This document shows, piece by piece, positions 5,921 to 51,828 of a stretch of DNA of 64,000 bases. The DNA is taken from contig CATNEN010000025.1 in assembly GCA_950097015.1 (NCBI GenBank), positions 8,618,001-8,682,000 of the forward strand, written 5' to 3'. A program made the translations under genes and the position numbers. The notes under the pieces were generated by a model that did no database searches, was not told where the DNA came from, and saw nothing but the letters and a program-made list of their open reading frames with translations. Origin of the DNA: Macrostomum hystrix. Lineage: Eukaryota; Animalia; Platyhelminthes. The stretch's first letter is position 1. The number at the start of each line of letters is the position of its first letter.

Positions 5921-8900
5921 ATGAGTTTCACCGACCGCGTCATCAGCCTGTGCGAGACGGCACCGGATGAGCGTAGCGAAGAGGAAATCGAATACGTGGC
6001 CAGGTGGATCGGCTCCAGTAGCTCGTATTTTCGCAAGCTTCGAAACAAAGGTGCGCACAACTTCGGCATGTTGCTCCATGTTTTCTGTATCGCACAACAC
6101 ATTTCCATCGCATTGTCTTCAATCAATTTACGAATAGCATTCATTGAACAAGAAACTTTGCAGGCCGATCGTCAGAGTTCTAGCCTACGCTCGTAGATCT
6201 TTCAGCTTGACGTTGACAGAAATAAAGTGCAATTTCTGGTTCAATGGTCGCCTTTGGCACATTCACGATGTTTTTCTCTGCCAATCTCCACTGTATTAGA
6301 CACATCTCGGATATCTCCAAGCTTGTCTTCACAGAGTCACACAGACAGTCAGACAGAGTTAGACAGTGCTTGGGTGGGACAAAAAAGGCAATAATTATTT
6401 TTGCAGATGCCATCCGTGAGGTCGTTCGCGATTGTCATCTGCAGAGATTTCGATCCAACGAACTGATCATCAGACAGGGAGAGAAGGGCGACAGTTTCTA
6501 CCTGGTCATCATCGGCCGGGTGTCTGTCTACGTAAACAGCACACTTGAGCAAGCCACAGCTCTGGAAAAGCTCGCCAACGAACCCAGCTCGGAGTTAGCT
6601 GGACATTCAGCTAGCGCAACCACACAAGCGCACACGGCTGCTGATGGTGGCACCGACGAGCAGGACGAGGCAGACGACGCCCAGGAGGACGTCGATGTTG
6701 CTTTCCGCGATGCCGACCAGTTCGGCAACGACAGCGAGGAGTTACGCAGTCGCGTGCTCGGAGCTCACGTACTTCAGATGGGCGAAGGCTATGCCTTTGG
6801 CGAGATCGCCCTCACCAGCCCCAACAGCATCCGCAAGGCGTCCGTCATCTGCGACGAGGACGCTGCCGTGTTGGTCATTCACCAGCTATCATTTGCCAGG
6901 ACGCTGAAAGCCTACCAGCTACAAGAGTACCAGATGATTGACAGGTTCATTGACACCTGTCCAGTGTTCGCCAACTGGCGACCGAAGCAAAGGCAGAGTC
7001 TGCGCAACAGTCTGCACCGGGAGGTCTACGGCTTCGGCGAGCCCATCGTGCAGCAGGGACAACAGAGCGGTGGCCTATTCTTCATTGTGGGGTGAGTTGC
7101 ATGTCAATTTGTTACTTTTGGTATATGGTACATCTTAATAAAAGGAGAAAATCAGTTTTAAGTTCGTCTACTAACGGAGAACATCAGGTGAGAATGAATA
7201 AAATCACCCTTAGAATCGTACTCCAGTAGTCCAGCCACCAGTCAAATATTCCCTAACCATCACATCCCGCCGACCCGTTATCCCATGTAGCTGTTGCATT
7301 AAAACCAGAGTGACGCTGTTTCTGAATTGCACTGCCCCGCCAAACGGGGTTAGCGTCAATTTTATTAACAATTCAGGGCCTCTTTGGTCACAATAGCTTC
7401 CCCTACGATCGACCGCTGCAGCGAGAGACCAAGGGGGAAGTGGTTGATGTAGCGAGGGGATGGAAAAAGTATTGGGTGGAGAGACGGAGGCCGGCGAGTG
7501 GCAAACTGTTGAAACTTGTTCGCCCTTGGACAGAGGGGGCCCTATACGGAAGGACATCAGACCTTGGTTTCCATGCCAACCGGCCCTGTTCAGCTGGAAA
7601 TTCTATCCCATCTGCTGCTTCTATTGCGCTCTCTTCATCGCACCTAACATCTCCAATGCATACTCAATAAATTGCAAAAGAAATATTTAATGATAGTCGC
7701 TATCAACATCGTATCCAACCGGCTCAGGGGATCCGTGAAGCTACTTGCCGATCCAACAAAGTGGCCGGCGAGCATTCAGAAGAACGCAGACAAAGAGGGC
7801 GCATCACCTTCACCGGCCAGAGCGGCGCCGGCTCCTGCGGCAGTTCAGGCAGGCCTTCTGCGTCACCGCCAGGGTTATCAGGCAGCCGAGCAGAGGGTGC
7901 GCAATCGCCAGGTAGAAATCGCCCTGCTGGGCGAAGGTGAAATCCTCGGACAGGTCGAACTGCTGGCCAACTTCAGCGAAAGCCTGACCACAGCGGTCAG
8001 TGCAGACCAAACCTACGGCTACTGGCTCAACCGCGCCAACTGCCGGCGCCTGTTGGCTCGCAACAGACCCGCACTCGCCCAGCTGCGCCACACAATCCTG
8101 CTGCGCCTCCAGTCGCGCTCTCAGCGCGCTCCCCTGATGCGCCGCCTCGGCCAGGATCCTCGCGTTGCTGGCGGCGTTGCGGCTGCGGCGGCAGCGGCGG
8201 CAGCGGCAGCAGCAGCTGCTGCAGCCACCACTGATCCCGTGGCAGCCGGCGAGCAGCAGCGTCTGCTGCAACAGAAACAGCGGCAGACGCTGCTGATGCA
8301 CACTCGCAAGCAGCCGCCGTCTGGCGACCTACTCTGGCAGCACATGCTGGCCATGTACGTTGAGGGTCGCGGAGAGCTGGGCCCGGCTCCCGTGGATGCG
8401 TCGCTGTATTACCGCCACATGTGCCGGGTGAATGCCGAGCGGAGGCGGCAACTCAGAGAGCGAGCCAGACCAGCAAGACTTTTAGCGTCAATGCAGGAGG
8501 ATGAGGCTGAAGATGAGGCTGGTCTTGATTCTGAAACGCAAGGGAAGCAGCGGCAGTCGCGGCTGACAGAGCATCAGCAGCCGCCTAGGCGGACGGTTCC
8601 CAGGAGTCTCCGATTGCTGAAGAGGGAGCTGGAAGCCTCAGGTGGCGGAAGCCTCATAAACACTCGTAAATACTCGTACTTTTGCCACTCTAGGACACGT
8701 TTCTCCATCTTCTGAGAAGAAATTCAATTGAAGTGCGATGCAGAGAAAACTAGGTCATTTGGTCATAGTCAACCCGCAGCCAGCGTGGAGGCAGTTCTGT
8801 CCGTTCCGCTGACTCCCGAACACACACACACACACACAGACAGTCGTGTGCATCTGTCCGGAATTTTTCAAATGAATGTGGCCTCGCGGAGGATTCGAGT

Positions 8901-19671: not shown

Positions 19672-20937
19672 CCCTAGCACCTCAAATAACCAACTTAAAT
19701 AAACAGGCCCACCACCCAAAAGCAGGGAGGGGTAAGACAAGACCAGGTGCAGGGTGTGCATAAATGTTGGTTAGCTAGCAATGACTAGGTCATTGGTCAT
19801 GTATCCAATTCCAGCTTTTTATTTTGGATAGGGCTAAATATTTAGGTAGTCCATGGTCAGGAAAGTGCAGCATGTGCACTGAAACAAAACATATCTGGAT
19901 TGTTTTGGCTGTGTGCCATGTTCCATATGACAAAGCACCAAAGAAAATATGAGTGCCAAAATAGCACCTATGTGCAAAAATTACTTGTGTTCATAAGTTT
20001 AATTTTAGCTGTATGCTTTCTACATATTCAGTTTTGAAGCAAGAAAAAATGATAAATTGCACTTTTGTAAAAAAACATCCTTATTTTAATTGTATGTACA
20101 AAATTTTAATAATGTTTTTTTGCAACAATCCTTTTTTCTTATAGTATATTTTGTGTTAGAGGTATATGTGCAGAATAGTGCAAGTTTCCAACCAAAATAT
20201 TTAGTATCTTGAAAAAGTCAGAAATTTTCAAGAAATTTGACAGAAATTTGAGATGAACCATGTATGCCATATTGTCCCATATAGCTGGTAAAATGTTATT
20301 GTGTGCCAAGTGAGCACTGTGTTTGCAAAAAATATTTGTGTATTGAAATATTAGGTAAAATTGACCACTTAACTGACTGGCAGGCAGCTTAGAAAGCAGA
20401 TGGCTTTTTTAGAAGTATCAAAATTTTAGGTGATCAAAATCACAAATTTTTTTGCCTCTTAGCCCTTGCAGATCCATCCAAATGCTATCAAGATAAAAAT
20501 GCTATGTCACAATTGTTGTATGTGAGGCAGCGTGGCCAACTGAAGAACAGAGCACTGGGTTAGAGGGTTGGAACACACGCGAGCCCTCCAAAGGCCTGTG
20601 CGCACTAATATATATTTTAGCCAGTCAGAGTAAACAACAACCCCCCGTCCCGGCCTAGACCGGTTCGGATGGACCGACCCCCCCAGCCAATCAAAACGCG
20701 CCACGCGCACTCTAAGGCGGCATGCAAACCGCATACACAACAACAATGTGTACTTCAGAGCTGGGGTGCAAACAAGGGGAAAGGCCCCACCACTAGCAGA
20801 ACCCGGGATGCTTAAAATAGCTTGTAAACCATCAAGAAAGTGCCTTTAGTGTTAGTAGTGGCATAAAGACTTTAGTGGACTTGCCCAATGAGCTTGCCAA
20901 CAGCAGGTTACCCATTCACAGCCTGATTTTCTTGCAG

Positions 20938-22582
20938 GCTCCGCCTAAGCGTGAGGCAAAGCAAGCAGCTCTTGGCCGTCTTGGTGTCTCAGTCTCAGCT
21001 GGTGGCACCGGAGCCATTGGCAAAGCAAACAGCAGTCATGCCTCGAAGCGCTCATTGGCATCAGCAGTGTCATCGGCAACAGATCAGAACAAGCGCCGAT
21101 TGTCCAGTCGGAAGGCTGCAGCTGAAGCCATTGCCGCCCTGGCCCCAGCATCAGTAGGTCAAAAGCGCAACAGACAGTCAGCGCCCCCGGCAGCGACAAC
21201 CAACGCTGCTGCAGCCTCAGGCACCGTCATCGACGTTCAAACGAAGAGAATCGGTGTGTTTAAAATTTTTCCCAACATCCCCACTTGAAAATTTATATAG
21301 AATTCTTAGCTTCAGGATGGGAAACATAGGGGATTCCAAACATTCAGGACAGGGGTGGTAGAGGATTCTTAGATTTATGATACGGAAGGTAGGAGATTCC
21401 CAGCTTCAGAATAAGAGAAAGGTAGGGGATTCCCAGCTTTAGGATGGGGAAGGTAGGAGATTCACAGCTTCAGAATAAGGGAAAGGTAGGAGATTCCCAG
21501 CTTTAGGATGGGGAAGTTAGGGGATTCCCAGATTCAGGATGGGGAAGGTAGGGGATTCCCAGCTTTAGGATGGGGAAGGTAGGGGATTCCCAGCTTTAGG
21601 ATGGGGAAGGTAGGAGATTCCCAGCTTTAGGATGGGGAAGGTAGGGGATTCCCAGCTTTAGGATGGGGAAGGTAGGGGATTCCCAGATTCAGGATGGGGA
21701 AGGTAGGGGATTCCCAGCTTTAGGATGGGGAAGGTAGGAGATTCCCAGCTTCAGAATAAGTGAAAGGTAGGATATTCCCAGCTTTAGGATGGGGAAGGTA
21801 GGGGATTCCCAGATTCAGGATGGGGAAGGTAGGGGATTCCCAGCTTAAGAATAAGGGAAAGTTTGGGGGATTCCAGCTTCAGGATGGGGAAGGTAGGGGG
21901 TTCACAGCTTCAGAATAAGGGAGAGGTGGGGGTTCCCAGCTTCAGGATGGGGAAGTTAGGGGATTCCCAGATTCGGGATGTGAGTCCACAGGACTGTTGT
22001 GACTTATTACTGATCAATGTATGAATTGCTTTCGCAGCTTCGAAAAAGGAGCAGCAGCAGCAGCAGACACAAGCTCTGAAGAAGCAGAAGAAATCTGAGC
22101 CGGCGGTCACCCCGAAGCGCCAGCCGCCGTCTCCAGTTGAGAAACAGCGCAGCCGCAGTCGGCAGAAAAAAACGCCCTCTGCAGAGCCGTTGGACCCATT
22201 CGACATCAGCGGTCTGGACGGCGACTTGGCGGCGAAGTCGGCCAGACGACAGAAGCAGAAGCCGACCATGGCAGCAGCGTCGGCTCCGTCAACTGCAGCC
22301 AGCGGTAGCCACGGAGGCAGCTCGCGTCAGCTGCTGCTGTGCCACCGGCACGCCTACCAGTTCTTCACTCCGTCGCGGCCGCGGCAGCACATTGGCGGCT
22401 CTCAACTTCGCCAAAAGAGCAAAGCCAAGGATAGCCGATCTTCAACTACTGGCAGCGGCGGAGATGTCGCCAATAACGACGACGTGGACTTGGATGCCGA
22501 AGTGGATGTTGAAGCGAATGCGGATGCATCGCCAAGGTTTGATCGTCGACAGCGGTCGACGGCGGCTGCTGCGACTTCTTAG
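20938..22582 (+). CDS. Last two exons (20938-21253, 22038-22582) of a basic low-complexity protein, unknown function
   Basis: Acceptor TTTTCTTGCAG|GCT; donor ATCG|GTGTGT and acceptor TTTCGCAG|CT join in phase 1 into the 22190-22582 frame. The upstream exons and start codon were not found. Confidence 0.6.
21310..21980. repeat. 31-bp G-rich minisatellite GGGGATTCCCAGCTTTAGGATGGGGAAGGTA, intronic
   Basis: About 20 copies filling most of intron 21254-22037. Confidence 0.95.
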
Positions 22583-23396
22583 AACATGTTGAACAAGTTT
22601 TCTAGATTTTGTTTCGGACATTTTTTTGTAAAAAAAATGAAATAATTTGTCTCTGCTGGTGCTTTAGACTTGTCTGTGCTGTCAAATTCCACATTTTCGT
22701 ATTCAGCCGAACCTAGAAGGCTTGCTCATTTGAAAATAGCTGTTCGATCATCGGGCTTTTGTAACCACGAGACTGGAGTTAGGAAACACTGTACCACATA
22801 CTTCATGCCATGCTTTTTACACATATTCCTGTTCCGTTTTTCATGGATCTACTTTGTGTACTTTTTAGTCTCAACTAGCGCGACTGAATATTGCGAGTAA
22901 ATTCGGCGATTTGTAAATAATCTGCATTTTTCTCTAGTTTTAACGCTTTGTCAACGATCTTTTTTAAAACAAACGATTTTAGAAAAATACATAAAATAAT
23001 GGTGTTAAATTTTTGCGACAAACGATTTGACTTCTGCCTGTCCTGTGAAGCATTATTATTCTCGTAGCTAAATTCCTTGATCAAGGCAATTCAAAAAGGC
23101 GACGAATTATCATTGTTTCTCTTTTAGCTATTTCGTTTGATCTTATAGTGACAGCAGCAGGAGGTGCTAGACTCGAACCCGCAGCGTACGTACAATATAT
23201 AATAGGACATTTTGATATTTATTTTCAATTAATTTACCCATGCAGCTTTAGAGAATTCAGTCTAGAAAAAAGTTGCGTTATTACTAAGAAAAAACAATTG
23301 TATACTTTTCCGAAATATATCGTAGCTATTAAGTTTAGAGTTGAGTTCTTCTTGGGAAACACGCATCATATACTACTTAGCCGAGCTCAGTAGCAT

Positions 23397-24071
23397 CTAG
23401 TAGTATTCCGCTTCGGCGTCGTCGTTGTTCTCGTTCAGTGAGCGCGGCACAATGGCTGGCACAGGCGTCTTGGTTGGCGCGGCAGTCGGCACCGCGAATC
23501 GCCCGACCAGGAAGCGGCTCATCCGGTTGCTCCAGCGAATGAGGCCGCGACGCTGCCGCTCGGTCACGCCGCTACAGCCCACGGTGGTGCTGTTCAGGCC
23601 AGATAGCAGGCGAGCCAGACCTCGCAGTCGGCGAACGATGCGGCGGCCAAAGCCGCGGCGTCTGCGGCCAGCCCGACCCCTCCGGCCTTCGATTTCAAAT
23701 GGACGCGACCGCCTCGAGCCGAAACGGCGCAGTAGGCGGCGGATGCGGAATCGGCGCCTCTCGCGGCGCCTACCCCGGCGCCAACCCGAGTCGGAGTCAG
23801 AGTCGAGCCACTGCTTGGCCTCCGGGTCCGCAGATTCCTGAAAACAATGTGTCCATGCAGTGTCATTTTTTATCATTAACTCAGTTTACTTGTGAGTACA
23901 TGCATAAGCTAGCTGTGGGCGCACCTCGTTCTCGTTGAGTTCGGCCAGGTCGCTAGCAAGGCTGTTGTCCAAGAAGTCGCTTTCATCCGTAGCGGAGGAA
24001 GTGTCAGCGACGGCGGTGGCCACAGCCAAGAAGCCGAACAGCAGTAGACCAGTTAGTAGGGCCGGTCGCAT
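23397..24071 (-). CDS. Secreted Arg-rich precursor, 195 aa (exons 24071-23925 and 23837-23397)
   Basis: Signal peptide MRPALLTGLLLFGFLAVATAVA, acidic pro-region, then an Arg-rich domain. An 87-bp phase-0 intron (GAG|GTGCGC...TTTTCAG|GAA) joins two separate ORFs of the track in frame. Confidence 0.8.
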
Positions 24072-24610
24072 TTTTTGTGTACTCGCTGGACAGTTTAGAA
24101 CTTTGCTGCCTCAGATTTCTTCCAGAGTTAACTTGGCAAAATGATTCGATTGGCGTCCTTAAATACTGAAGTTTCGGAGGCTTACCCCTGGCCAGCACTT
24201 TGAGCAGGTGCCAAGGCGAATCCGGGCTTTTTGACCAGTAAAAATACGGATCTGTGTGGAAAACCAGTGCGCAGTCGCACATTGTCCATTGTTCTATAAA
24301 TAGATAATCTACAGGGACAATAGGAGGCTACTAGGGCGAGGTGAAACTGCTCAAATCCTGGAATTGGTGCTCGCACAAAACTTGGATGCTTCAATTCGCA
24401 ACTATCCGCTGCAGTAAATCCTGGCTATCTCAAGTTGAGCTTGAGTCATGATGTCCTACATTAGTAGTAGCTTAGATTACTAGTATTTTGTCTATCTCGC
24501 ATTACGCTTTCTGCAACAGTTATTGCAATTGAATGAAAATATTTTAAGTACCTATTTCATTTGGTACTTTAAAGAGAATTTTGAATTTTTTCTAAGCGCA
24601 TTTTGTACAA

Positions 24611-25052
24611 CATCTAGGTGCAGTGAAATGGGACTACATCTAGGTGCAGTGAAATGGGACTACATCTAGGTGCAGTGAAATGGGAATACATCTAGGTGCA
24701 GTGAAATGGGACTACATCTAGGTGCAGTGAAATGGGACTACATCTAGGTGCAGTGAAATGGGACTACATCTAGGTGCAGTGAAATGGGAATACATCTAGG
24801 TGCAGTGAAATGGGACTACATCTAGGTGCAGTGAAATGGGACTACATCTAGGTGCAGTGAAATGGGAATACATCTAGGTGCAGTGAAATGGGACTACATC
24901 TAGGTGCAGTGAAATGGGACTACATCTAGGTGCAGTGAAATGGGAATACATCTAGGTGCAGTGAAATGGGACTACATCTAGGTGCAGTGAAATGGGACTA
25001 CATCTAGGTGCAGTGAAATGGGACTACCTGTAAGTGCAGTAAAATGGGACTA
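24611..25052. repeat. 26-bp minisatellite CATCTAGGTGCAGTGAAATGGGA(C/A)TA
   Basis: 16 full units plus 1 degenerate unit; the A variant is at units 3, 7, 10 and 13. Confidence 0.95.
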
Positions 25053-25789
25053 CAAATTTCGTTATATTTCGTTACTACGAGTAACGAAATATTCGTACTA
25101 CAAAATATAAGTAGTCAACGCGTTACTTTGAAAAGCAGTAATCAATGCACAAAAGAATAGCTAAAGTCCGTAAAAATTTCGAATCACGATCGAGGAGCAA
25201 CTCAAGTATAGAATAGATAAGCAATGGGTTTTATAAGAAAGTTTTATTGTCCGTTCAGCATCAGTTGAGTGGCTCATTGCACTCTGACTAAATAGCAAAA
25301 ATATAACTGTAAGCACAAGAAAGTACAAATACGAGTACATATTGTTACTAGGCAAGCTCTGGGAGATATTGCAAACTATCGGATAAATTGCACTTCCTAT
25401 TGAGTTAGCAAATATAAACATAAATACTCATAGTAGTAGAGTCCCAATATGCACATCTGAAACCAGCCGTGCATTCATTATGCCCATTTAGTCCAAATAG
25501 AATAACTTCAAGTCAGCGGAGCTGAAAAAGCCGGAAAAATACAAAGAATATAATCGCCTTGTAATACTCAATAGAGATAAAGGCTAGATTTCTTTTTGGT
25601 GTACATTTTAGATCCTAAAAATTAAAACGCAATTGTTTATTGCAGGAAATTAAAAGACAAGCAACATTTTTAGAAAAAAAAACTGCACAAATAGTTGTAG
25701 ATGTTGCTGGGAAAAGTAGAGACTTATAAATAATTCAAACATAAAATACGCAAATGTAACAACGATACCTATTCGTCTAGCTTAATAAC

Positions 25790-27675
25790 TAATCCTGCTG
25801 CGATTCTAGCTTCGATACTGATCCTCCTGCTGCGATTCCAGCTTAGATACTGATATTGCTGCGATTCTAGCTTAGATACTGATCTTGCTGCGATTCTAGC
25901 TTAGATACTGATCCTGCTGCGATTCCAGCTTAGATACTGATCCTCCTGCTGCGATTCTAGCTTAGATACTGATATTGCTGCGATTCTAGCTTAGATACTG
26001 ATCCTCCTGCTGCGATTCCAGCTTAGATACTGATATTGCTGCGATTCTAGCTTAGATACTGATCTTGCTGCGATTCTAGCTTAGATACTGATCCTGCTGC
26101 GATTCCAGCTTAGATACTGATCCTCCTGCTGCGATTCTAGCTTAGATACTGATCTTGCTGCAATTCTAGCTTAGATACTGATCCTGCTGCGATTCTAGCT
26201 TAGATACCGATCCTCCTGCTGCGATTCCAGCTTAGATACTGATCTTGATGCGATTCTAGCTTAGATACTGATCCTCCTGCTGCGATTCTAGCTTAGATAC
26301 TGATCCTCCTGCTGCGATTCCAGCTTAGATACTGATCCTCCTGCTGCGATTCTAGCTTAGATACTGATCTTGCTGCGATTCTAGCTTAGATACTGATCGT
26401 GCTGCGATTCTAGCTTAGATACTGATATTGCTGCGATTCTAGCTTAGATACTGATCCTCCTGCTGCGATTCCAGCTTAGATACTGATATTGCTGCGATTC
26501 TAGCTTAGATACTGATCTTGCTGCGATTCTAGCTTAGATACTGATCCTGCTGCGATTCCAGCTTAGATACTGATCCTCCTGCTGCGATTCTAGCTTAGAT
26601 ACTGATCTTGCTGCAATTCTAGCTTAGATACTGATCCTGCTGCGATTCTAGCTTAGATACCGATCCTCCTGCTGCGATTCCAGCTTAGATACTGATCTTG
26701 ATGCGATTCTAGCTTAGATACTGATCCTCCTGCTGCGATTCTAGCTTAGATACCGATCCTCCTGCTGCGATTCCAGCTTAGATACTGATCTTGATGCGAT
26801 TCTAGCTTAGATACTGATATTGCTGCGATTCTAGCTTAGATACTGATCCTCCTGCTGCGATTCCAGCTTAGATACTGATCCTCCTGCTGCGATTCCAGCT
26901 TAGATACTGATCCCCCTGCTGCGATTCCAGTTTAGATACTGATCCTCCTGCTGCGATTCTAGCTTAGATACTGATATTGCTGCGATTCTAGCTTAGATAC
27001 TGATCCTCCTGCTGCGATTCCAGCTTAGATACTGATCCTCCTGCTGCGATTCCAGCTTAGATACTGATCCTCCTGCTGCGATTCCAGCTTAGATACTGAT
27101 CCTCCTGCTGCGATTCCAGCTTAGATACTGATCCTCCTGCTGCGATTCCAGCTTAGATACTGATCCTCCTGCTGCGATTCCAGCTTAGATACTGATCCTC
27201 CTGCTGCGATTCCAGTTTAGATACTGATCCTCCTGCTGCGATTCTAGCTTAGATACTGATCTTGCTGCGATTCTAGCTTAGATACTGATCCTGCTGCGAT
27301 TCTAGCTTAGATACTGATCCTGCTGCGATTCTAGCTTAGATACTGATCCTCCTGCTGCGATTCCAGTTTAGATACTGATCCTCCTGCTGCGATTCTAGCT
27401 TAGATACTGATCTTGCTGCGATTCTAGCTTAGATACTGATCCTGCTGCGATTCTAGCTTAGATACTGATCCTCCTGCTGCGATTCTAGCTTAGATACTGA
27501 TCTTGCTGCGATTCTAGCTTAGATACTGATCCTGCTGCGATTCTAGCTTATACTGATCGTGCTGCGATTCTATAATAGCTAAGATACTGATCCTGCTGCG
27601 ATTCTAGCGTAGATACTGATCCTGCTGCGATTCTATAATAGCTAAGATACGGATCCTGCTGCGATTCTAGCTACG
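25790..27675. repeat. 29-32-bp minisatellite GCTGCGATT(C)TAGCTTAGATACTGATCCT(CCT)
   Basis: About 1.9-kb array with a few recurring linker variants. Confidence 0.95.
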
Positions 27676-28079
27676 GTCCCTTCTACGATGATTCTAGCAA
27701 AGTTTAAAATGAAACATAAGCCACAGTGATAAACGACAAAGGTAAGAGGACAAAGACAGAACACACACAGTAAAACTAAAGCAGATTAATTATCAAGCCA
27801 TTGAATTGATTACAAAATTTCTGCCTTGAAGCAGATACCGCCAAGTTGCTGATGCACAAGTTTAAGCTTGAGGTTTCACAAAAACTGTAAATTTCTGAAT
27901 CGGTTTCTGATTCTCGAATATTTCATAAATAAAAAGCTTCCATATTTAACTTTCTTAAACTTGCATGTAGAAATTCATTTAACTGGGCCAAAAAATGTGA
28001 AGAAATTGTAATATAAATACTATTCACAATTCGTATACATATATATTCACAATCACAATTTAATTCGTACCCTAAATCC

Positions 28080-28455
28080 GGGTAACCTCTTGCCCCACAT
28101 CCGGCTTACCTGGTGCCCTACATCCGGCTAACCCGGTTCCCTACATCCGACTTACGTGGTGCCCTACATCAGGCTTACCTGGTTCCCTACATCCGGCTTA
28201 CCTGGTTCCCTACATCCGGCTTACCTGGTTCCCTACATCCGGCTTAACTGGTTCCCTACATCCGGCTTACCTGGTGCCCTACATCCGGCTTACGTGGTGC
28301 CCTACATCAGGCTTACGTGGTGCCCTACATCAGGCTTACGTGGTGCCCTACATCAGGCTTACGTGGTGCCCTACATCAGGCTTACCTGGTTCCCTACATC
28401 CGGCTTACCTGGTTCCCTACATCCGGCTTAACTGGCTCCCTACATCCGGCTAACC
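28080..28455. repeat. 23-bp minisatellite CTACATCCGGCTTACCTGGTTCC
   Basis: About 16 copies; explains ORF 28156-28431. Confidence 0.95.
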
Positions 28456-28635
28456 CTGTGCCGTCACATGCCTGACTGCTCACATAAAAAATGCTTTCGA
28501 CACAATCTCTTCGTTAAAATGGCATAAAAATAGTCAGCAAAAGTGTCGCCGGTCCGGTTTGAGTTCAGCGCAGACAGCATATCGAATACTAGCCGGGTTA
28601 CAGATAATCTCGCAATGTTCTCAGGTGGATTAATT

Positions 28636-31600
28636 TTATAGTCGCGTCTCGTGACCACCGGCTGGAAATCCGTCTGGCAATGGCAGGGCGGAGTAGCGGC
28701 TCCGACGATTGGACCGACGACCGTCGGCGCCGCTGCCGCCGCATAGGCAGCACACACAGAGCGACATGATGATTGACAGCAGCTGCGAAAATGAAAAAAA
28801 GTATTAACTTCGTTCTGTACTACTTATATTGACTGGTGCAGTAGACTGGTGCGGCGTCTTAGTAGTAAAATTTGTCTAGTTTTCCTATTTCTTTTCTACT
28901 CACCTCCAAAGCAGTCAAACCGACAGAGGCGAAAAGGCCGATGCGAATGAAGCGCCAAGCCGTTTCCACGACAACCGAACGGCAGCCCTAAGTGGGCAAG
29001 TATTTGCATGCATAATGAGTCACATAGACTCACACCTGACACCTGAGCTAGACTCATCTCACACCTGAGCTAGACTCATCTCACACCCGAGCTAGACTCA
29101 TCTCACACCTGAGCTAGACTCATCTCACACCTGAGCTAGACTCATCTCACACCTGAGCTAGACTCATCTCACACCTGAGCTAGACTCATCTCACACCTGA
29201 GCTAGACTCATCTCACACCTGAGCTAGACTCATCTCACACCTGAGCTAGACTCATCTCACACCTGAGCTAGACTCATCTCACACCTGAGCTAGACTCATC
29301 TCACACCTGAGCTAGACTCATCTCACACCCGAGCTAGACTCATCTCACACCTGAGCTAGACTCATCTCACACCCGAGCTAGACTCATCTCACACCTGAGC
29401 TAGACTCATCTCACACCCGAGCTAGACTCATCTCACACCCGAGCTAGACTCATCTCACACCTGAGCTAGACTCATCTCACACCTGAGCTAGACTCATCTC
29501 ACACCCGAGCTAGACTCATCTCACACCTGAGCTAGACTCATCTCACACCCGAGCTAGACTCATCTCACACCTGAGCTAGACTCATCTCACACCCGAGCTA
29601 GACTCATCTCACACCCGAGCTAGACTCATCTCACACCCGAGCTAGACTCATCTCACACCTGAGCTAGACTCATCTCACACCCGAGCTAGACTCATCTCAC
29701 ACCCGAGCTAGACTCATCTCACACCCGAGCTAGACTCATCTCACACCCGAGCTAGACTCATCTCACACCTGAGCTAGACTCATCACACACCCGAGCTAGA
29801 CTCATCTCACACCCGAGCTAGACTCATCTCACACCCGAGCTAGACTCATCTCACACCCGAGCTATACTCATTAAGCCAATCCAGCGGAGTCTCACCCTAT
29901 CGTAGGCCAGCTCAAACGGCAGACTATAAGGTTTCAGCTGACATTCGGCTGGCCCCAGCTTTTCAGCATTGCAACAGGACCAGGGAATCTGTGGGGTGTC
30001 GCCAACGCTGCTGCTTCTGTAGTCTCTGTATGACTGGCCACCGCAGCAGTATAGCTGAATGGATTGATTGGGTGCATTTGGAAAAATTGCAGAACACAAG
30101 TAGAGCTTCAATTAACAGTAGGACTACCAAGCCATTTTGCCGCCCGTTTTTTTACCCAGAAAATTTTTTTTGCTGCACCCGAACGGAACAATGCAATCAC
30201 ACGAAACTCAAGAACACGGGCCAACTTTTTGTTGCGCATCTTCTGAAACAAGAAACAAGTCGCCAGCTCTTCAGACCGTCGAGATATTCAATGTTTCTGG
30301 CCGAAGGTCCGATTTTTCCTATAAGAGCTAGTGTATTTCATACACCCCTATACACTAATTATTATTAATAACGCCCACTAACGCACTATAACAGCCTGAA
30401 GTACTGGGATATCAACTATTACTGTTAATAAAGGAATGCATCTAGAGCTGTTACTCACTCTCTTGTGAATAATGTCCATGAGCTCAGTGGAGTCAGCTTT
30501 GCCATTGTACTGGTAGCCTCGCTGCCAGCCATGAAATGTGTCGCCCATTTTCTCTTGAACTTCGCCTCAGTGCGGCCTTTCCAGACCTTCAAAATTGATC
30601 AGCATGTCACCCGAGTGTGCTTGCATCATCTCCGACTTCGGCGGTCACCGAACTTTATCTAGACGGAGCTGCTGGACCTTCAACAAGTGGCACCAGCCGA
30701 CTATGGAGTCCCTAAAGCGAATTTCTCTACTTTCGCTGATCAAGCCTCGACATTGGGCAACACTCAACTACTTTACATGCTCCTCTAGTCCGTCAACCAA
30801 TCAGTCACCACCCCGACGCCGTCAGCACCGTCAGCAGGGTGCCTCCAGCTGCCAATGGAGTCCCTAAAGCGAATTTTTCTACTTTCTCCAAAAAAGCCTC
30901 GATATTGGCCTAAACTCAACTATTACTTGTTTAAGGTCCAGCTGCTCCGTCTAGATAAAGGTAGATAACCGCCGAAGTCGGAGATAATGCAAACATATTC
31001 GGGTGACATGCTGATCAATTTTGAAGGCCTGGCAAGGCCGCACTGAGGCGCAGTGCAAATTCGTGTATAGGGGTGTATGAAATACACTAGCTCTTATGGG
31101 AAAAATCGGACCTTCGGCCAGAAACATTGAATATCTCGACGGTCTGAAGAGCTGGCGACTTGTTTCTTGTTTCAGAAGATGCGCAACAAAAGGTTGGCCC
31201 GTGTTCTTGAGTTTCGTGTGCTTGCATTGTTCCGTCCGGCTGCAGCAAAAAAAATTGTCAGGGGGGGAGGGAATTCCCCCCCCCTTGGTAGTTCTACTGT
31301 TAATAAAGGAATGCATCTAGAGCTGTTACTCACTCTCTTGTGAATAATGTCCATGAGCTCAGTGGAGTCAGCTTTGCCATTGTACTGGTAGCTTCGCTGC
31401 CAGCCATCAAATGTGTCGCCTATTTTCTCTTGAACCTAAAAGATAATAAATGATTATTGAATGAATGATAAGGTTATCAGCCCAATAACACAGCCTGAAG
31501 TACTGGGATATCAGCCCACTAACAGCCTGAAGTACTGGGATATCAGCCCACTAACAGCCTGAAGTACTGGGATATCAGCCCAAAAACAGCCTGAAGTACT

Positions 31601-35668: not shown

Positions 35669-36710
35669 TTGACTTACTTGACTTATCTGCAGGGTGCTCC
35701 GTACCGACGGACGCAGCGAGGAGGCGGAGGGGACCGCCCATTCCGCTAACCCCTGGCAAACCAGACGACCTCAGGAGAGGTGGTGTTGCTCAGGGTGGCC
35801 CGTCGGACTCGCCTGCAGCATGGTCCTCCGCACTGTCAGTGGGAAAGACGTTGGCTCGCCCCGTATCCCGGAGGTACCGGGCAAGCTGAGGGATGCTCTC
35901 GGGCCTGCAAGCATCGGAGAGAGTTGGGTTAGGCCCAAGGTGTTCAAGCCTTGCCCTGGTGAAAACTGGGCAGTGGCAGATAAAGTGTTCGGCGTTTTCA
36001 CTGCCCGAGCTACAGAATGTGCATTTGTCCTCCTGGAGCTGGCCCTGGAGAAAGCGGTGTCGAGAGAAACAGCCATGCCCTGAGAGGGCCATGCTGACTG
36101 CGCGGAGATCTCTGCGGTTCAGCCTTAGGAGGGCTTTGCGCAGGCGGTGAGACGGACATGGTGCCGCTGCCCTGGACTGCTTGCAGTTTTGGGTCTTGGT
36201 CCATCTGTCCAGGTGCTGTGCCTCCATCCAGCGTTTCAGCTTGATGTTTGTCACAGTGGCGGGGATAGGAGCGCCAGGTTCTGGCCCAGCCAGGGTGCTG
36301 GCTGCTCCAGCTTTTGCGAGCTGGTCCGCCATCTCATTCCCTGGGAAGCCAGCGTGACCTGGGATCCATTTGAGCTTGACCTCGTTGGCCCGCGCCAACT
36401 CGTTGAGCTGGGCGTTGCAGTCCAAGGTGGTCTTAGAGCAGGTGGTGCTTCGGTCGAGGGCCCGGAGGGCGGCTTGACTGTCGGAGTGGAAAAAGATCTT
36501 CCGGTCAGTGAGCCCCCTCTGGCGCATCTCTGCTGCACATGAACTGATGGCGAGCATCTCGTTCTGAAAAACGCTGGAGTTTTTCCCCGTGTGCTGGGAG
36601 TGAGTCCAGACGACCTCTCCTCCCTTGTAGATACAGGCTCCGTATCCTGAGATTCCGTTTATGAGGGAGCCGTCGGTATAACAGTGGATTTCAGAGTCGG
36701 TCCAGCTGTC
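35669..36710 (-). mobile_element. 5'-truncated RNase H-encoding LINE (I/R1/LOA-type) with 13-bp TSD
   Basis: RNase H motifs YTDGS, VFQNEMLAI, SDSQAAL, WIPGH..FPGNEMADQLAK; C-terminal CTFC...EHFICHC; 3' tail of AAGTC/AAGT repeats. CATTGCCCGCGAC is duplicated at 35656-35668 and 36711-36723. Confidence 0.9.
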
Positions 36711-38773
36711 CATTGCCCGCGACAGGCTTGGCCAGTTTGTAACCATGCAGCCGTCACGCAGTGCGGGATGAAGCCAGGGCGCTAACTTTATAGAAGCAGA
36801 GTTCCCGCATCTCAGACAGAGAGAACAGGAAGAGGGGCTTGAGTATTGCGATTGGTTTTTATGCGAAAACCTTGTTTACATCGAGTGGGAGGCTTCCGAA
36901 TAAAGTAATTTTTTATGCGTCCAAGATGATTACCGTCGACGTAGCGGTGATAAAATTCTGGAACCTGACGCTTCTGAAGTATTATGGGAGGGCCAAAAAG
37001 AGCAGTGTTTTTGAAGCTCATGAGCAACTTTTTCAGCAAAGATGATTTTGTAGATTTAAGAACTACTGGTTTTTGATACATGCGCTCATGTCAAGGGGAC
37101 ACCACCTCCGGGATAGGCTTGGATAACTGACAATTGTCAAGAAATTTAGGGTTTCTGACACCCCAGGAATCTTTAAACGCTGTAATGAAAGGTAGTTGTT
37201 TCATTTTTTATCCCCAAACGACCCACATCAGTAGTTGTCTTACAGCCGGAAAGTAGAGCTACACTCAACGCATTTTTACTCGTTGCTGAGTGCCAATCCC
37301 AAATCTACTATTAATAGAGTCCGTGTGAGTACTAGTAGCGCATGTGCAGGGGAGATAACTAAGTAGATTTGGGATAAATTACTAGCCAATTTACTGACTG
37401 CATAATTGGCTTCCTGCTTGGACTATTAGATGGATGTCAGAAGCAGTTGAGTACCCGGTGACCAAGCCCTATTTATCACCGATTCGCACGAATTGACGGA
37501 GATACAGTAAGGTCTTCGGGCCTCGACAGGGAGACTTTTCTAAGTTCCATATTATGGTCATAACTTTCTGAAAATCGTGCAGGAAATCAGTGCAGTGTTC
37601 CATTGTAGTCATTTATTTGTACGCTGGTAAAGAGAAATCTTCCAAGTTGTCACCGAACTGAAGGCTCGATCGTACCAGCGAACTCATGCAGATGGTTTCT
37701 GACTTAATACTCGTAATTCCAAGAAAGGAAAACGGAGCTGTCAGGAGCTGTTAGCGGATAAAAAGTCCAGATTTTTCCGATTGCCACCATATGGTGTGCT
37801 ATAGACCCCACAAGCCACGTATTTTTCTATTTGATTTGCGACACGCAGTACAGACATCGCAATACAGTGATGTGTGCGTATTAATTACATTTTCTGAGAC
37901 ACAGTTCAATATTATCATATTGACTGGCCTATATTGATTGGCCGGAAAGCCATATTAGTGAATAACTGCTTGAAGAAAAAACAGACTACTCCTCAGTAGA
38001 GGGGGGTTCTTTGTAAATCCCAATGTGCCAAGGCTGTATCCGGCACGCGAGGCATAAAAGGAGGGAGACGGCGAATACTTGCTGTTTCCAGTCTACCCCC
38101 GTCAGCTACATGTACCAGTATTTCCAAGAAACTCCCCAGCTGACACCTGATGCTGTGGCTGGGTTTATCTTACAGCCCGTATCCCATTCCCACACTACTC
38201 CGCTCCCTTGCCAGTAGGAGTTGAGTCCTCAGGCGACGTGAGCCAGTTTTTTGCCCGGATTGACAGATTGACATGCTGCAAACCAACGAAACAAAGTCGT
38301 GATGTAGGCTTGTGTGACTCTGGCTTTGAGGCCCCACCTGACAATATGCCGCTGCTGACTACAACTCATAAGCCAGAACAAAAACATAAAGTCAACGGGA
38401 ATGCATTGAATGCATTGGGGATTGTCTACAGTCCTGGTAAGAAGCAGTGGTAAATAGCATGTAGCAGAGAGCAATGCCTTCAATGCTCTTTATTCAAAAC
38501 TTATTTCAAGATTTTCGAGCCAAATTTTATTTGAATTGTGATTTTCTCAAGATGCCGGCTATGCAGACAAGTTGATTTATAGAAACTCAGAAGACAGAAC
38601 TTTTAGCATGAGTTCGACTCAACCAACTATTTGCAAGTGGTTTCATCTGCGGTGGCAATGTGATATAGGATATTCTGAATGCTCGAGAAGGAGGGATTAT
38701 CTTTACGCATTTTTAATCTGTCTCACTAGCTTAATCTCTTTTAGTCAGTTGTCTGCGTTGACCTTTCGTTACC

Positions 38774-44566: not shown

Positions 44567-46124
44567 GAATTGGAGAGAGAAACTGTTGAATCGAATCGGC
44601 TCTCAGATTGCTCTAGGTTTGGTCTTATATTATGGCAATATGAAAACATTGCACAGATTAGATTATCACACTCACTGCCTGACTCTGGGCCCCAATCTTA
44701 TTTCCAATGACGTCAATCTTCGCTGTGCTTTTTAAAAGTCTACAGGCAGTGTGCGCCCACACCTCCAAATCAGCAATCTCTTGATAAAAGCATTCCTGCA
44801 AATAACGCTGGTTAAAAAATTAAACTAGAAAACATACGAGTATATCTCATATACTTATGCGACTAGAGTGCAAACAAAGCATTGTTATTTCTTTCATACG
44901 TATTTTTCATTAATAATTTAGCGTTGCCCTCAGATACTTGATTAGAAAATAAAGCACACGCAGTTCAAATCCCATTTTCCCTGAACAATTTCTCAGGAGA
45001 TGAACACAAGACCCGCCATGCGTCAGGATGAAATGAAGTCACGAAATGCTCAATTAATTTATTTCGCTTGGAAGTTGCTTGTTGAAGATAACTAGAAGCA
45101 TTATGGCGGCCCACAATTTCTGTGAATCAGTAGTAATGCTTTTTAGTTTTAGCTTGAGCTTTTTGCCTAATCCAGTAACTGTGGATTAACCTGACTCGCA
45201 CAGCTCATTAGTGCAAATGCAAACAACTAATAGGGACAAGTAAAAATACAAGAGCATAACTAAATTTGGCCTGATCACAGATCGCAGATATGACAGCTCA
45301 TTCCCCACTAGAAAGTGCCAGCTTAAAGTCGCAGCAATTTAGTAGTCTGCTGTAACAAACAATGACCACTTGAATAACCTTTTTCATGGTTTTTGTACTT
45401 CTTAATTCATCTGCTTGGCAATCTTGCATATAAAAAATGTCTGTCAGCCTCCACCGATAGCATTGCAGTGCAAGCATATTTGTTAGATTTTATAGGATTA
45501 GCAGGGCCAGTGCATGCAGTCAGGCATGAACATATAAGAATCGATCAGCAGAGAGCTTTTGACAAAAAATACTAATACTATTCTTTAAAAAGACGGCCCG
45601 AGGACAAAGTACTACTATTGAACTCGCAAAATTTTCAGAAGCGAGCGAATCGAGCGTGAATTAATTATGCCATTATTGATTGCATAATTTCATCGAGCGC
45701 TTGGGACGGCCTCGTCTTCTTTATCGAGACTTCCTTGGAGTCTGCAAACAACGCGGACTAATTGGGTCGCCTGATGCACTTCGGCTCTGAAGACTCTGCA
45801 ATGATGGCATCCCAGTTGAATGCACTCAAATATGCTAGCTTTAAGAGTTGCTCATTAAGATTGCGCAACATCTTGTCCGTTACAAAGAATCTCGATAGTG
45901 TTTCGCAATTAGCCTACTGCACAGAAGTAGTTAGTTTTAATAACTTCAGTTATTATTTATTAGGTCGGTGTTGACCTGAATAAATAGGAAACTATGAACT
46001 AACCATTATCACACAGGCGGAATGCTGGGTGAAGTATTTTAAAGGTTAAAATAATTGTTCATTATAATTGTGCATCATTGTGGGATCGAAATCGCAAGTT
46101 CAAATCTCAGAATTTAATCTATTT

Positions 46125-46335
46125 ACCTATCAGTGTCTACTCTCACAGTCTACTCTCAGAGTCTACTCTCAATGTCTACTCTCAGTGTCTACTCTCAATG
46201 TCTACTCTCAGAGTCTACTCTCAATGTCTACTCTCAGTGTCTACTCTCAGTATCTACTCTCAGTGTCTACTCTCAGTGTCTACTCTCAGTGTCTACTTTC
46301 AGTGTCTACTCTTATTGCCTACTCTCAGTGCCTAC
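46125..46335. repeat. 13-bp minisatellite GTCTACTCTCAGT
   Basis: About 16 copies. Confidence 0.9.
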
Positions 46336-46674
46336 TATTCTGAGTGTTCAATCTAAATTACCAAATTTCGTTACCTAATCTTAAGCTCTGAAGCACCTCA
46401 AACTCTAGACGATATTTGGAACGTGCTCAAGGAGCGGTAGCGTGAACTCACCCAAACAAGTTCGCTCAGTGTTTCAACTCATTGGGCCATCCATATTAGT
46501 CGAATTAGAGATCTAAAAAGAAAATCTTACAAATCAAGAGTTTGTTTAGAACAGAGAGTTGTACTGGAATACTGTGCTATCGGCTGCGCATCTGGCCTAA
46601 TTAGGGCAGGTGTAATTACTTAATATGATTTTTAAGCAGATATTGGAGAGATCCAAGGATTTTGCTTACAATGT

Positions 46675-49600
46675 GATTTCGGGGATTTCAAATCCCTCGG
46701 GGATTCGAAAGTCAGGGATTTGAAAATCGGGGATTTGAAAGTCGGGGATCTGAAATTCGGGGATTTAAAATTTGGGGATTCGAAAGTCGGGGATTCGAAA
46801 GTCAGGGATTCGAAAGTCGGCATTTTGAAATTCGGGGATTTGAAAGTCGGGGATTTGAAAGTCGGTGATTGTAAAGTCGGGGATTTTAAATTCGGGGATT
46901 TGAAATTCGAGGATTTAAAAGTTAGCATATTGAAATTCGGGGATTTGAAATTCGGGATTTAAAAGTCGGCATATTGAAATTCGGGGATTTGAAAGTCGGG
47001 GATTTGAAAGTCAGGGATTTTTTAATTCGGTGATTTGAAATTCGGGGATTTGAATGTCAGGGATTTTTTAATTCGGTGATTTGAAATTCGGGGATTTTGA
47101 AATTCGGTGATTCGAAAGTCGGGGATTTGAAAGTCGGGGATTTAAAAGTCGGGGATTTGAAAGCCCGGGATTTGAAAGTCGGTGATTTGAAATTCGTGGA
47201 TTTGAAAGTCGGCATATTGAAATTCTGGGATTTGAAAGTCGGGGATTTGAAATTCCGGGATTTGAAAGTCAGAGATTTGAAATTCGGGGATTTGAAAGTC
47301 GGGGATCTGAAATTCGGGGATTTAAAATTTGGGGATTCGAAAGTCGGGGATTCGAAAGTCAGGGATTCGAAAGTCGGCATTTTGAAATTCGGGGATTTGA
47401 AAGTCGGGGATTGTAAAGTCGGGGATTTTAAATTCGGGGATTTGAAATTCGAGGATTTAAAAGTTAGCATATTGAAATTCGGGATTTAAAAGTCGGCATA
47501 TTGAAATTCGGGGATTTGAAAGTCGGGGATTTGAAAGTCAGGGATTTTTTAATTCGGTGATTTGAAATTCGGGGATTTGAATGTCAGGGATATTTTAATT
47601 CGGTGATTTGAAATTCGGGGATTTTGAAATTCGGTGATTCGAAAGTCGGGGATTTGAAATTCGGGGATTTGAAATTTGGGGATTTGAAAGTCCGGGATTT
47701 GAAATTCGGGGATTTGAAAGTCAGGAATTTGAAAGTCGGGGATTTGAAAGTCCGGGATTTGAAAGTCAGGGATTTGAAATTCGGTGATTTGAAATTCGGG
47801 GATTTTGAAATTCGGGGATTCGAAAGTCGGGGATCTGAAATTCGGGGATTTAAAATTTGGGGATTCGAAAGTCGGGGATTCGAAAGTCAGGGATTCGAAA
47901 GTCGGCATTTTGAAATTCGGGGATTTGAAAGTCGGCATTTTGAAATTCGGGGATTTGAAAGTCGGGGATTTGAAAGTCGGGGATTTAAAAGTCGGGGATT
48001 TGAAAGTCCGGGATTTGAAAGTCGGTGATTTGAAATTCGTGGATTTGAAAGTCGGCATATTGAAATTCGGGGATTTGAAATTCCGGGATTTGAAAGTCAG
48101 GGATTTGAAATTCGGTGATTTGAAATTCGGGGATTTTGAAATTCGGGGATTCGAAAGTCGGGGATCTGAAATTCGGGGATTTAAAATTTGGGGATTCGAA
48201 AGTCGGGGATTCGAAAGTCAGGGATTCGAAAGTCGGCATTTTGAAATTCGGGGATTTGAAAGTCGGCATTTTGAAATTCAGGGATTTGAAAGTCGGGGAT
48301 TTGAAAGTCGGGGATTTAAAAGTCCGGGATTTGAAAGTCGGGGATTTTAAATTCGGGGATTTTAAAGTCGCGGATTTGAAAGTCGGGGATTTTAAATTCG
48401 GGGATTCGAAAGTCGCGGATTTGAAAGTTGGCATATTGACAAGTCGGGGATTTAAAAGTCGGGGATTTAAAAGTCGGGGATTTAAAAGTCGGGGATTTGA
48501 AATTCCGGGATTTGAAATTCGGGGATTTGAAATTCCGGGATTTGAAAGTCAGGGATTTGAAATTCGGTGATTTGAAATTCGGGGATTTTGAAATTCGGGG
48601 ATTCGAAAGTCGGGGATCTGAAATTCGGGGATTTAAAATTTGGGGATTCGAAAGTCGGGGATTCGAAAGTCAGGGATTCGAAAGTCGGCATTTTGAAATT
48701 CGGGGATTTGAAAGTCGGGGATTTGAAAGTCGGTGATTGTAAAGTCGGGGATTTTAAATTCGGGGATTTGAAATTCGAGGATTTAAAAGTTAGCATATTG
48801 AAATTCGGGGATTTAAAAGTCGGCATATTGAAATTCGGGGATTTGAAAGTCGGCATATTGAAATTCGGGGATTTGAAAGTCGGGGATTTGAAAGTCAGGG
48901 ATTTTTTAATTCGGTGATTTGAAATTCGGGGATTTGAATGTCAGGGATTTTTTAATTCGGTGATTTGAAATTCGGGGATTTTGAAATTCGGTGATTCGAA
49001 AGTCGGGGATTTGAAATTCGGGGATTTGAAATTTGGGGATTTGAAAGTCCGGGATTTGAAATTCGGGGATTTGAACGTCAGGAATTTGAAAGTCGGGGAT
49101 TTAAAAGTCGGGAATTTGAAAGTCGGGGATTTAAAAGTCGGGGATTTAAAAGTCGGGGATTTAAAAGTCGGGGATTTGAAAGTCGGGGATTTAAAAGTCG
49201 GGGATTTAAAAGTCGGGGATTTGAAAGTCGGGGATTTGAAAGTCCGGGATTTGAAAGTCGGTGATTTGAAATTCGTGGATTTGAAAGTCGGCATATTGAA
49301 ATTCGGGGATTTGAAAGTCGGCATATTGAAATTCGGGGATTTGAAATTCCGGGATTTGAAAGTCAGGGATTTGAAATTCGGTGATTTGAAATTCGGGGAT
49401 TTTGAAATTCGGGGATTCGAAAGTCGGGGATCTGAAATTCGGGGATTTAAAATTTGGGGATTCGAAAGTCGGGGATTCGAAAGTCAGGGATTCGAAAGTC
49501 GGCATTTTGAAATTCGGGGATTTGAAAGTCGGGGATTGTAAAGTCGGGGATTTGAAAGTCGGGGATTTGAAAGTCGGGGATTTAAAAGTCGGGGATTTAA

Positions 49601-51828
49601 AAGTCCGGGATTTGAAAGTCGGGGATTTTAAATTCGGGGATTTTAAAGTCGCGGATTTGAAAGTCGGGGATTTTAAATTCGGGGATTCGAAAGTCGCGGA
49701 TTTGAAAGTTGGCATATTGACAAGTCGGGGATTTAAAAGTCGGGGATTTAAAAGTCGGGGATTTAAAAGTCGGGGATTTGAAATTCCGGGATTTGAAATT
49801 CGGGGATTTGAAATTCCGGGATTTGAAAGTCAGGGATTTGAAATTCGGTGATTTGAAATTCGGGGATTTTGAAATTCGGGGATTCGAAAGTCGGGGATCT
49901 GAAATTCGGGGATTTAAAATTTGGGGATTCGAAAGTCGGGGATTCGAAAGTCAGGGATTCGAAAGTCGGCATTTTGAAATTCGGGGATTTGAAAGTCGGC
50001 ATTTTGAAATTCGGGGATTTGAAAGTCGGGGATTTGAAAGTCGGGGATTTAAAAGTCCGGGATTTGAAAGTCGGGGATTTTAAATTCGGGGATTTTAAAG
50101 TCGCGGATTTGAAAGTCGGGGATTTTAAATTCGGGGATTTTAAAGTCGCGGATTTGAAAGTCGGGGATTTTAAATTCGGGGATTCGAAAGTCGCGGATTT
50201 GAAAGTTGGCATATTGACAAGTCGGGGATTTAAAAGTCGGGGATTTAAAAGTCGGGGATTTAAAAGTCGGGGATTTGAAATTCCGGGATTTGAAATTCGG
50301 GGATTTGAAATTCCGGGATTTGAAAGTCAGGGATTTGAAATTCGGTGATTTGAAATTCGGGGATTTTGAAATTCGGGGATTCGAAAGTCGGGGATCTGAA
50401 ATTCGGGGATTTAAAATTTGGGGATTCGAAAGTCGGGGATTCGAAAGTCAGGGATTCGAAAGTCGGCATTTTGAAATTCGGGGATTTGAAAGTCGGCATT
50501 TTGAAATTCGGGGATTTGAAATTCGGGGATTTAAAATTTGGGGATTCGAAAGTCGGGGATTCGAAAGTCAGGGATTCGAAAGTCGGCATTTTGAAATTCG
50601 GGGATTTGAAAGTCGGGGATTTGAAAGTCGGTGATTGTAAAGTCGGGGATTTTAAATTCGGGGATTTGAAATTCGGGGATTTAAAAGTCGGCATATTGAA
50701 ATTCGGGGATTTGAAAGTCGGCATATTGAAATTCGGGGATTTGAAAGTCGGGGATTTGAAAGTCAGGGATTTTTTAATTCGGTGATTTGAAATTCGGGGA
50801 TTTGAATGTCAGGGATTTTTTAATTCGGTGATTTGAAATTCGGGGATTTTGAAATTCGGTGATTCGAAAGTCGGGGATTTGAAATTCGGGGATTTGAAAT
50901 TTGGGGATTTGAAAGTCCGGGATTTGAAATTCGGGGATTTGAACGTCAGGAATTTGAAAGTCGGGGATTTAAAAGTCGGGAATTTGAAAGTCGGGGATTT
51001 AAAAGTCGGGGATTTAAAAGTCGGGGATTTAAAAGTCGGGGATTTGAAAGTCGGGGATTTAAAAGTCGGGGATTTAAAAGTCGGGGATTTAAAAGTCGGG
51101 GATTTGAAAGTCGGGGATTTGAAAGTCCGGGATTTGAAAGTCGGTGATTTGAAATTCGTGGATTTGAAAGTCGGCATATTGAAATTCGGGGATTTGAAAG
51201 TCGGCATATTGAAATTCGGGGATTTGAAATTCCGGGATTTGAAAGTCAGGGATTTGAAATTCGGTGATTTGAAATTCGGGGATTTTGAAATTCGGGGATT
51301 CGAAAGTCGGGGATCTGAAATTCGGGGATTTAAAATTTGGGGATTCGAAAGTCGGGGATTCGAAAGTCAGGGATTCGAAAGTCGGCATTTTGAAATTCGG
51401 GGATTTGAAAGTCGGGGATTGTAAAGTCGGGGATTTGAAAGTCGGGGATTTGAAAGTCGGGGATTTAAAAGTCGGGGATTTAAAAGTCCGGGATTTGAAA
51501 GTCGGGGATTTTAAATTCGGGGATTTTAAAGTCGCGGATTTGAAAGTCGGGGATTTTAAATTCGGGGATTCGAAAGTCGCGGATTTGAAAGTTGGCATAT
51601 TGACAAGTCGGGGATTTAAAAGTCGGGGATTTAAAAGTCGGGGATTTAAAAGTCGGGGATTTGAAATTCCGGGATTTGAAATTCGGGGATTTGAAATTCC
51701 GGGATTTGAAAGTCAGGGATTTGAAATTCGGTGATTTGAAATTCGGGGATTTTGAAATTCGGGGATTCGAAAGTCGGGGATCTGAAATTCGGGGATTTGA
51801 AAGTCGGGGATTTGAAAGTCGGGGATTT
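46675..51828. repeat. 15-bp satellite GAAA(TT/GT)CGGGGATTT, about 5.1 kb, with higher-order repeat
   Basis: Continuous array; explains all FKSPT, LKVGD and FESRG ORFs in 46632-51945. Confidence 0.97.

Follow-up and report, generated by a model that had tools for sequence, protein, structure and literature searches.

The window, a stretch of 64,000 nucleotides from the flatworm Macrostomum hystrix, harbors a gene with two coding exons on its minus strand. We are confident that this gene is real, conserved and restricted to Macrostomum, and that it encodes a protein of the secretory pathway. The predicted exons, the intron, the stop codon and two candidate flanking signals have the following positions in the window:

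24071-23925, minus strand: exon 1, coding part (147 nt, 49 codons), with the signal peptide and the first acidic block
23924-23838, minus strand: intron of 87 nt, GT-AG, phase 0
23837-23397, minus strand: exon 2, coding part, 146 codons and TAG
23397-23399, minus strand: stop codon TAG, which closes the frame of exon 2
24165-24169, minus strand: Initiator-like TCAGT, putative transcription start, 94 nt 5' of the ATG
23218-23223, minus strand: AATAAA, putative polyadenylation signal, about 175 nt past the stop codon

The ATG of exon 1 lies at position 24071, and the 49 and 146 codons add up to a protein of 195 aa. A first-pass annotation of this DNA had proposed exactly such a two-exon splice model, and it was borne out by the codon count, the GT-AG borders and the presence of an orthologue in Macrostomum lignano. 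A T-rich tract precedes the AG of the intron, and the GC content drops from 59% in exon 1 and 68% in exon 2 to 40% in the intron. We compared all six frames of exon 2, with a Ras-family small GTPase exon and an ankyrin-repeat ORF from the window as reference for codon usage. Minus frame 0 was the only frame free of stops and also had the highest codon usage score. CGC is the chief Arg codon in both Macrostomum species, and likewise in other genes of the window. Support for the predicted gene model comes from orthology and not from ORF statistics, and from the conservation and the annotation in M. lignano we infer that the M. hystrix gene is transcribed. The M. lignano gene has the same TCAGTATT string as the putative transcription start, 63 nt before its ATG.

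Five minisatellite arrays are located around the gene, at positions 24610-25054, 25776-27672, 28070-28462, 29039-29871 and 21308-21980 of the window. Their periods are 26, 29-32, 23, 22 and 31 nt, respectively, and they comprise 17 to 62 copies. The array at 24610-25054 begins about 540 nt 5' of the ATG, and short-period arrays are also present in the M. lignano intergenic region 5' of the orthologue. The block 28636-28786 (minus strand) is conserved with positions 6905-7052 of the M. lignano locus, with 91% amino acid identity over 22 residues. It starts directly after a splice-acceptor-like cgcag, lies downstream of the point where the annotation of the M. lignano tetraspanin gene stops, and probably represents a last, Cys-rich tetraspanin exon that the annotation missed. 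The convergent downstream neighbor (20875-22582, plus strand) has no Pfam domain; its conserved counterpart in M. lignano is an unnamed gene encoding 302-320 aa.

Elsewhere in the window, the minus-strand ORF at 35790-36746 encodes 318 aa with an RNase H domain and is probably part of a retroelement. The plus-strand ORF at 53556-54779 (407 aa) shows weak Pfam matches of the repeat type (Gp5_C, DUF445-like) and has the appearance of a low-complexity repeat protein or of repeat DNA that happens to read as an ORF. Positions 46000-52000 show a very strong GC skew (+0.34 to +0.56) and a series of ORFs, at 47549, 49206 and 51089, that are each 169 aa long, which suggests a tandem repeat with a unit of about 1.7-1.9 kb. 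The Ras-family small GTPase exon (56064-56750, plus strand) and the ankyrin-repeat ORF (60511-61722, minus strand) belong to ordinary genes.

The predicted protein is built from blocks that follow each other in the same order in both Macrostomum species: signal peptide, acidic block, Arg-rich block, helix-loop-helix, Pro/Ala-rich linker and acidic tail. In M. hystrix the following parts were distinguished:

24006-24071, minus strand: predicted signal peptide, residues 1-22, with a basic n-region, a hydrophobic core of 18 residues and A-x-A before the predicted cut (by hydropathy)
23787-23837, minus strand: second part of the acidic block, exon-2 residues 1-17, net charge about -4
23598-23786, minus strand: Arg-rich core, exon-2 residues 18-80, 29 Arg, 0 Lys and four R-x-[KR]-R motifs
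23499-23657, minus strand: conserved core, exon-2 residues 61-113, a pair of predicted helices and the loop between them; 32 of 53 residues are the same in M. lignano
23586-23594, minus strand: N-glycosylation sequon in the loop, N-S-T here and N-R-T in M. lignano
23574-23576, minus strand: single Cys of the whole protein, invariant in all homologues
23400-23441, minus strand: acidic C-terminal tail, exon-2 residues 133-146; the M. lignano end is likewise acidic

Exon 2 as a whole encodes 37 Arg and 2 Lys among 146 residues (25% Arg) and contains five R-x-[KR]-R convertase-type motifs and 15 dibasic positions. The net charge of the whole protein is about +16. The first-pass annotation had counted 29 Arg and no Lys in a stretch of 63 residues, which is correct for exon-2 residues 18-80. 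The acidic pro-region and the acidic tail that it described are both present as quoted, and both were also found in M. lignano. Its signal peptide is predicted from hydropathy and the A-x-A end, and this part of the protein is conserved in M. lignano as well.

We searched several collections for relatives of the protein. A HMMER search of 1.84 billion representatives returned four matches, two of which were M. lignano proteins. The last exon matched M. lignano with E values of 1e-9 to 3e-8 in phmmer (whole library) and of 4e-13 in BLASTP. No relatives from beyond Macrostomum were accepted among the 1.84 billion representatives. A leafhopper hypothetical protein (a tandem repeat, with 24 matched residues that are repeated six times) and a Lys/Gly-rich repeat protein of 1405 aa (aligned in seven stretches at 25% identity) were rejected as chance matches, since their scores were inflated by repeats. 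When the longest M. lignano form was used as the query, it led to the NCBI protein BOX15_Mlig021339g2 of 350 aa. The M. lignano protein cluster consists of the products of four annotated loci, Mlig021339.g1-g4, which are listed as hypothetical proteins (BOX15_Mlig021339g1-g4; PAA88494.1, PAA57484.1, PAA47760.1 and PAA49876.1). Four loci are expected from the polyploidy of M. lignano. Some M. lignano fragments carry the automatic UniProt name "Retinitis pigmentosa 1-like 1", which we discarded, as no doublecortin or other Pfam domain was found in them.

A Pfam search with both exons and with the M. lignano proteins gave nothing over threshold. A PDB profile search yielded no match and a feature search of the ESM Atlas no usable match. 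The word-indexed protein search remained blank for exon 2 alone and returned only M. lignano with a profile query. Exact-sequence look-ups with the 159-aa genomic ORF and the UniProt fragments matched no contigs. Across Pfam, PDB, the Atlas and the protein collections, no sequence relation to described antimicrobial peptide families was seen. Sequence and profile searches of the M. hystrix genome itself (220,453,370 bases, 42 contigs) revealed no paralogues; the weak matches had E > 0.8 and contained stops. The gene is single copy in this genome. In our literature search, nothing specific turned up on Macrostomum proteins that are Arg-rich, antimicrobial or related to rhabdites. The searchable full texts and paper supplements did not contain "Mlig021339", and no data on expression, secretion, processing or activity were located. 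The sequence family is new, its layout is familiar, and database entries for it already exist under the label hypothetical protein. The description of the gene as hidden and unrecognized is thus appropriate for the M. hystrix genome but not for M. lignano, where the orthologue had already been annotated.

Judged from sequence and gene order, the Mlig021339 loci are positional orthologues of the M. hystrix gene. The last exon aligns over its full length (146 residues in M. hystrix versus 147 in M. lignano). The first 22 residues, which form the signal peptide, align without gaps with 13 of 22 residues identical, and both end with A-x-A; this alignment score was reached by none of 1000 shuffles. 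The global alignment of exon 1 to M. lignano exon 1 had a z of 6.8 against shuffles. All three introns of the M. lignano gene end right before the exon start GAATCGGAG (Glu-Ser-Glu). The M. hystrix intron ends before GAATCTGCG (Glu-Ser-Ala) and is of phase 0 as in M. lignano, and the exon start GAATC (Glu-Ser) is common to all three M. lignano introns and the M. hystrix intron. One UniProt form from M. lignano has 13 extra residues exactly at the intron junction, probably due to a retained intron end. A tblastx comparison of the M. lignano locus with the window gave collinear matches to the tetraspanin gene (33406-28898), the target gene (23618-23412) and the downstream gene (22551-20917). Both neighbors, the tetraspanin gene upstream and the convergent gene downstream, are shared with three M. 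lignano loci in the same orientation.

The orthologues share with the M. hystrix protein the flanking genes, the signal peptide, the phase-0 intron, the Arg-rich last exon, the helix-loop-helix with sequon and Cys, and the acidic tail. They differ from it in length and exon number (350 aa and four exons), because the exon for the acidic-plus-basic unit was duplicated twice in M. lignano. They also contain some Lys, and no alignment is obtained for their acidic blocks and the initial part of their Arg block. While the whole M. hystrix protein is net basic, the M. lignano protein is net acidic with a charge of about -9. The M. lignano last exon nevertheless has 32 Arg and 5 Lys among 147 residues, and Arg-richness is, as far as these sequences tell, a trait of the family.

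The best-conserved part of the protein is not the extreme Arg run. It is the helix-loop-helix of about 53 residues, which aligns without gaps with 32 identical residues and shows a dN of 0.34 and a dS of 0.77 (dN/dS about 0.44). Nearly all hydrophobic positions of this core are kept or conservatively replaced, and the loop keeps the N-x-T sequon, the sole Cys and a run of invariant residues. Several positions with Arg or Ser in the first helix are occupied by Asp in M. lignano. Selection therefore acts on the hydrophobic face and the loop and not on the cationic charge. Conservation of the hydrophobic face, the sequon and the Cys without the charge suggests a defined fold or partner and not a generic cationic lytic peptide. 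In the acidic blocks and the N-terminal two thirds of the Arg block the composition is kept and the alignment is poor. The stretch RFRIRRLL, the first of the modules picked in the first-pass annotation, falls in a poorly conserved part, and the later two modules fall inside the conserved helix-loop-helix.

The first-pass annotation had described the Arg-rich core as amphipathic. Local hydrophobic moments reached values of up to 0.97. When the 63 residues of the core were shuffled, 28% of the shuffles reached the observed maximum of the helical hydrophobic moment and 9% reached the observed mean. The hydrophobic moment was therefore not above that of the shuffled controls, and amphipathicity beyond the effect of composition was not demonstrated. 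AlphaFold predicted helices at exon-2 residues of about 17-40, 61-84 and 93-114, both with and without a three-row alignment. The confidence of these models was low, with a mean pLDDT of 58 and 53 and the best values of about 70 in the two conserved helices. A homodimer prediction for the conserved core gave a score of 0.02, which counts neither for nor against binding.

The functions that had been suggested for the protein (antimicrobial, mucus/rhabdite or cohesive secretion) are conjectures from composition alone. An order of anionic propiece, basic processing motif and cationic part is present, as seen from the charge profile and the R-x-[KR]-R motifs, with cleavage at these motifs being a prediction. 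A signal peptide followed by an anionic block and a cationic core with convertase-type motifs fits a precursor for host defense or for a gland secretion. Of the individual readings, we tentatively place first a processed precursor whose Arg-rich helix-loop-helix would act extracellularly on anionic surfaces. The anionic blocks would offset the cationic part in transit and storage, and cleavage at the basic motifs would then release the Arg-rich C-terminal part. The freed helix-loop-helix may act outside the cell by binding to anionic surfaces, and host defense against microbes would be its single likeliest role.

Many precursors of antimicrobial peptides are known to combine an anionic propiece with an adjacent cationic peptide. 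Examples are the arminins of Hydra, the dermaseptin-type precursors of amphibians and the alpha-defensins of mammals, and the thionins of plants have an acidic piece at the C-terminus. The M. hystrix protein resembles these precursors in its predicted signal peptide, its anionic piece, the basic processing motif and the cationic, helix-prone part, and also in its taxonomic restriction and fast divergence. It differs from them by having no sequence relation to them, by a cationic part of about 115 residues, which is far longer than typical mature peptides, by the conserved sequon and the single-copy gene, and by the lack of conservation of several helix charges. We know of no characterized family of this kind from free-living flatworms.

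Several results weaken the assignment to host defense. The hydrophobic moment of the core does not exceed that of shuffles, the net charge is unlike between the two species (about +16 versus about -9), and the structure models are of low confidence (pLDDT 53-58). Moreover, the gene is single copy, whereas genes for host-defense peptides often form expanding families, and the glycosylation sequon is conserved, which is unusual for antimicrobial peptides. A more specific proposal is that the helix-loop-helix with its glycosylated, Cys-bearing loop would be the effector of a new, Macrostomum-specific host-defense family, and that the anionic blocks would inhibit it until cleavage by a convertase. 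We regard this version as rather doubtful.

A role in the structure or packaging of a gland secretion (adhesive, cement, rhabdite, mucus, or prostate or seminal fluid) is almost as likely as one in defense, although this assignment, too, is tentative. The alternating anionic and Arg-rich blocks would condense in secretory granules by charge pairing. After release, the blocks would cohere or bind to anionic partners, and the lone Cys could cross-link chains. The alternation of charge blocks in both species and the invariant Cys are in agreement with such a function. The same is true for the two acidic-plus-basic units that M. lignano gained by exon duplication, as is seen in repeat-building structural secretions, and for the fast divergence outside the core, with the core itself being only moderately constrained. 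According to PMC10468722, many orphan genes for secreted proteins in Macrostomum are related to glands or reproduction and evolve fast, and this abundance in the genus also favors a gland product. On the other hand, the M. hystrix protein is small (195 aa) and non-repetitive, and the conserved loop motif suggests specific recognition and not bulk material.

Charge-paired secreted adhesives are known from the cement proteins of sandcastle worms, which are large and repetitive. A Lys/Arg-rich adhesion protein of M. lignano is reportedly also secreted, strongly charged, large and repetitive. Like these adhesives, the M. hystrix protein is predicted to be secreted, is strongly charged and has a blocky composition suited to electrostatic condensation. 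Unlike them, it is small and has a conserved, non-repetitive core, and no sequence relation to them was found.

It is less likely, but still worth considering, that the gene encodes a prohormone or the precursor of a signaling peptide. The product would be a 23-residue peptide from the loop, cut out at basic motifs, with the acidic blocks serving as spacers. Prohormones of flatworm neuropeptides also combine a signal peptide with acidic spacers and numerous dibasic sites, and contain a short conserved stretch between basic motifs. In our protein the most conserved stretch is bracketed by the invariant motifs R-R-L-R and Q-R-R, 15 dibasic positions are present, and the single copy and the conserved synteny would also suit a prohormone gene. 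However, the hydrophobic face is conserved as well in the helices on either side of the 23 residues, and these helices would be lost upon cutting. The charge of the 23-residue stretch is +1 in M. hystrix and -3 in M. lignano. None of the four G-[KR]-[KR] sites of the M. hystrix protein has an aligned counterpart in M. lignano, so that amidation sites (Gly followed by basic residues) are not shared by the two species. The rest of the precursor contains neither a repeated nor a conserved peptide, and the units that are repeated in M. lignano are absent from the M. hystrix protein. The Arg density is also far above that of usual prohormones.

The remaining two alternatives, a nuclear protein or the absence of a gene, are very improbable even when taken together. 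Protamines and other sperm nuclear basic proteins have a very high Arg content and almost no Lys, and the 25% Arg in exon 2 as well as the Arg runs, which resemble nuclear or nucleolar targeting signals, would fit a protamine-like or other nuclear or nucleolar Arg-rich protein with an unused signal peptide. The hydrophobic N-terminus with its A-x-A end is, however, conserved in order and length, acidic blocks are present, the N-glycosylation sequon is conserved, and no nuclear protein family was matched in Pfam; we consider such a localization highly unlikely. The first-pass annotation had named a match to a protamine-like nuclear protein as a finding that would speak against it. No such match was obtained, and since the signal peptide is conserved, this objection does not apply. 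That the ORF arose by chance in GC-rich DNA, which yields long ORFs on both strands, or that the true gene is the plus-strand ORF for 138 aa rich in Arg (23425-23841), is hardly conceivable given that sequence, intron position and synteny all tie the minus-strand protein to a gene annotated in M. lignano, that GC content drops sharply in the intron, and that minus frame 0 alone is stop-free with the best codon usage. We concluded that the plus-strand ORF is a by-product of GC-rich coding DNA.

At present, the gene adds one more lineage-restricted secreted orphan to those of the genus. Its practical value lies in a validated gene model, the set of orthologues Mlig021339.g1-g4 and a defined conserved core, which can be used for in situ hybridization and RNAi in M. 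lignano. If the protein turned out to be a gland secretion, it would provide a small, tractable charge-block protein for the study of adhesion, mucus or seminal fluid in flatworms. If its cationic core was a defense effector, it would offer a first point of access to secreted innate immunity in a flatworm genus that is amenable to transgenesis.
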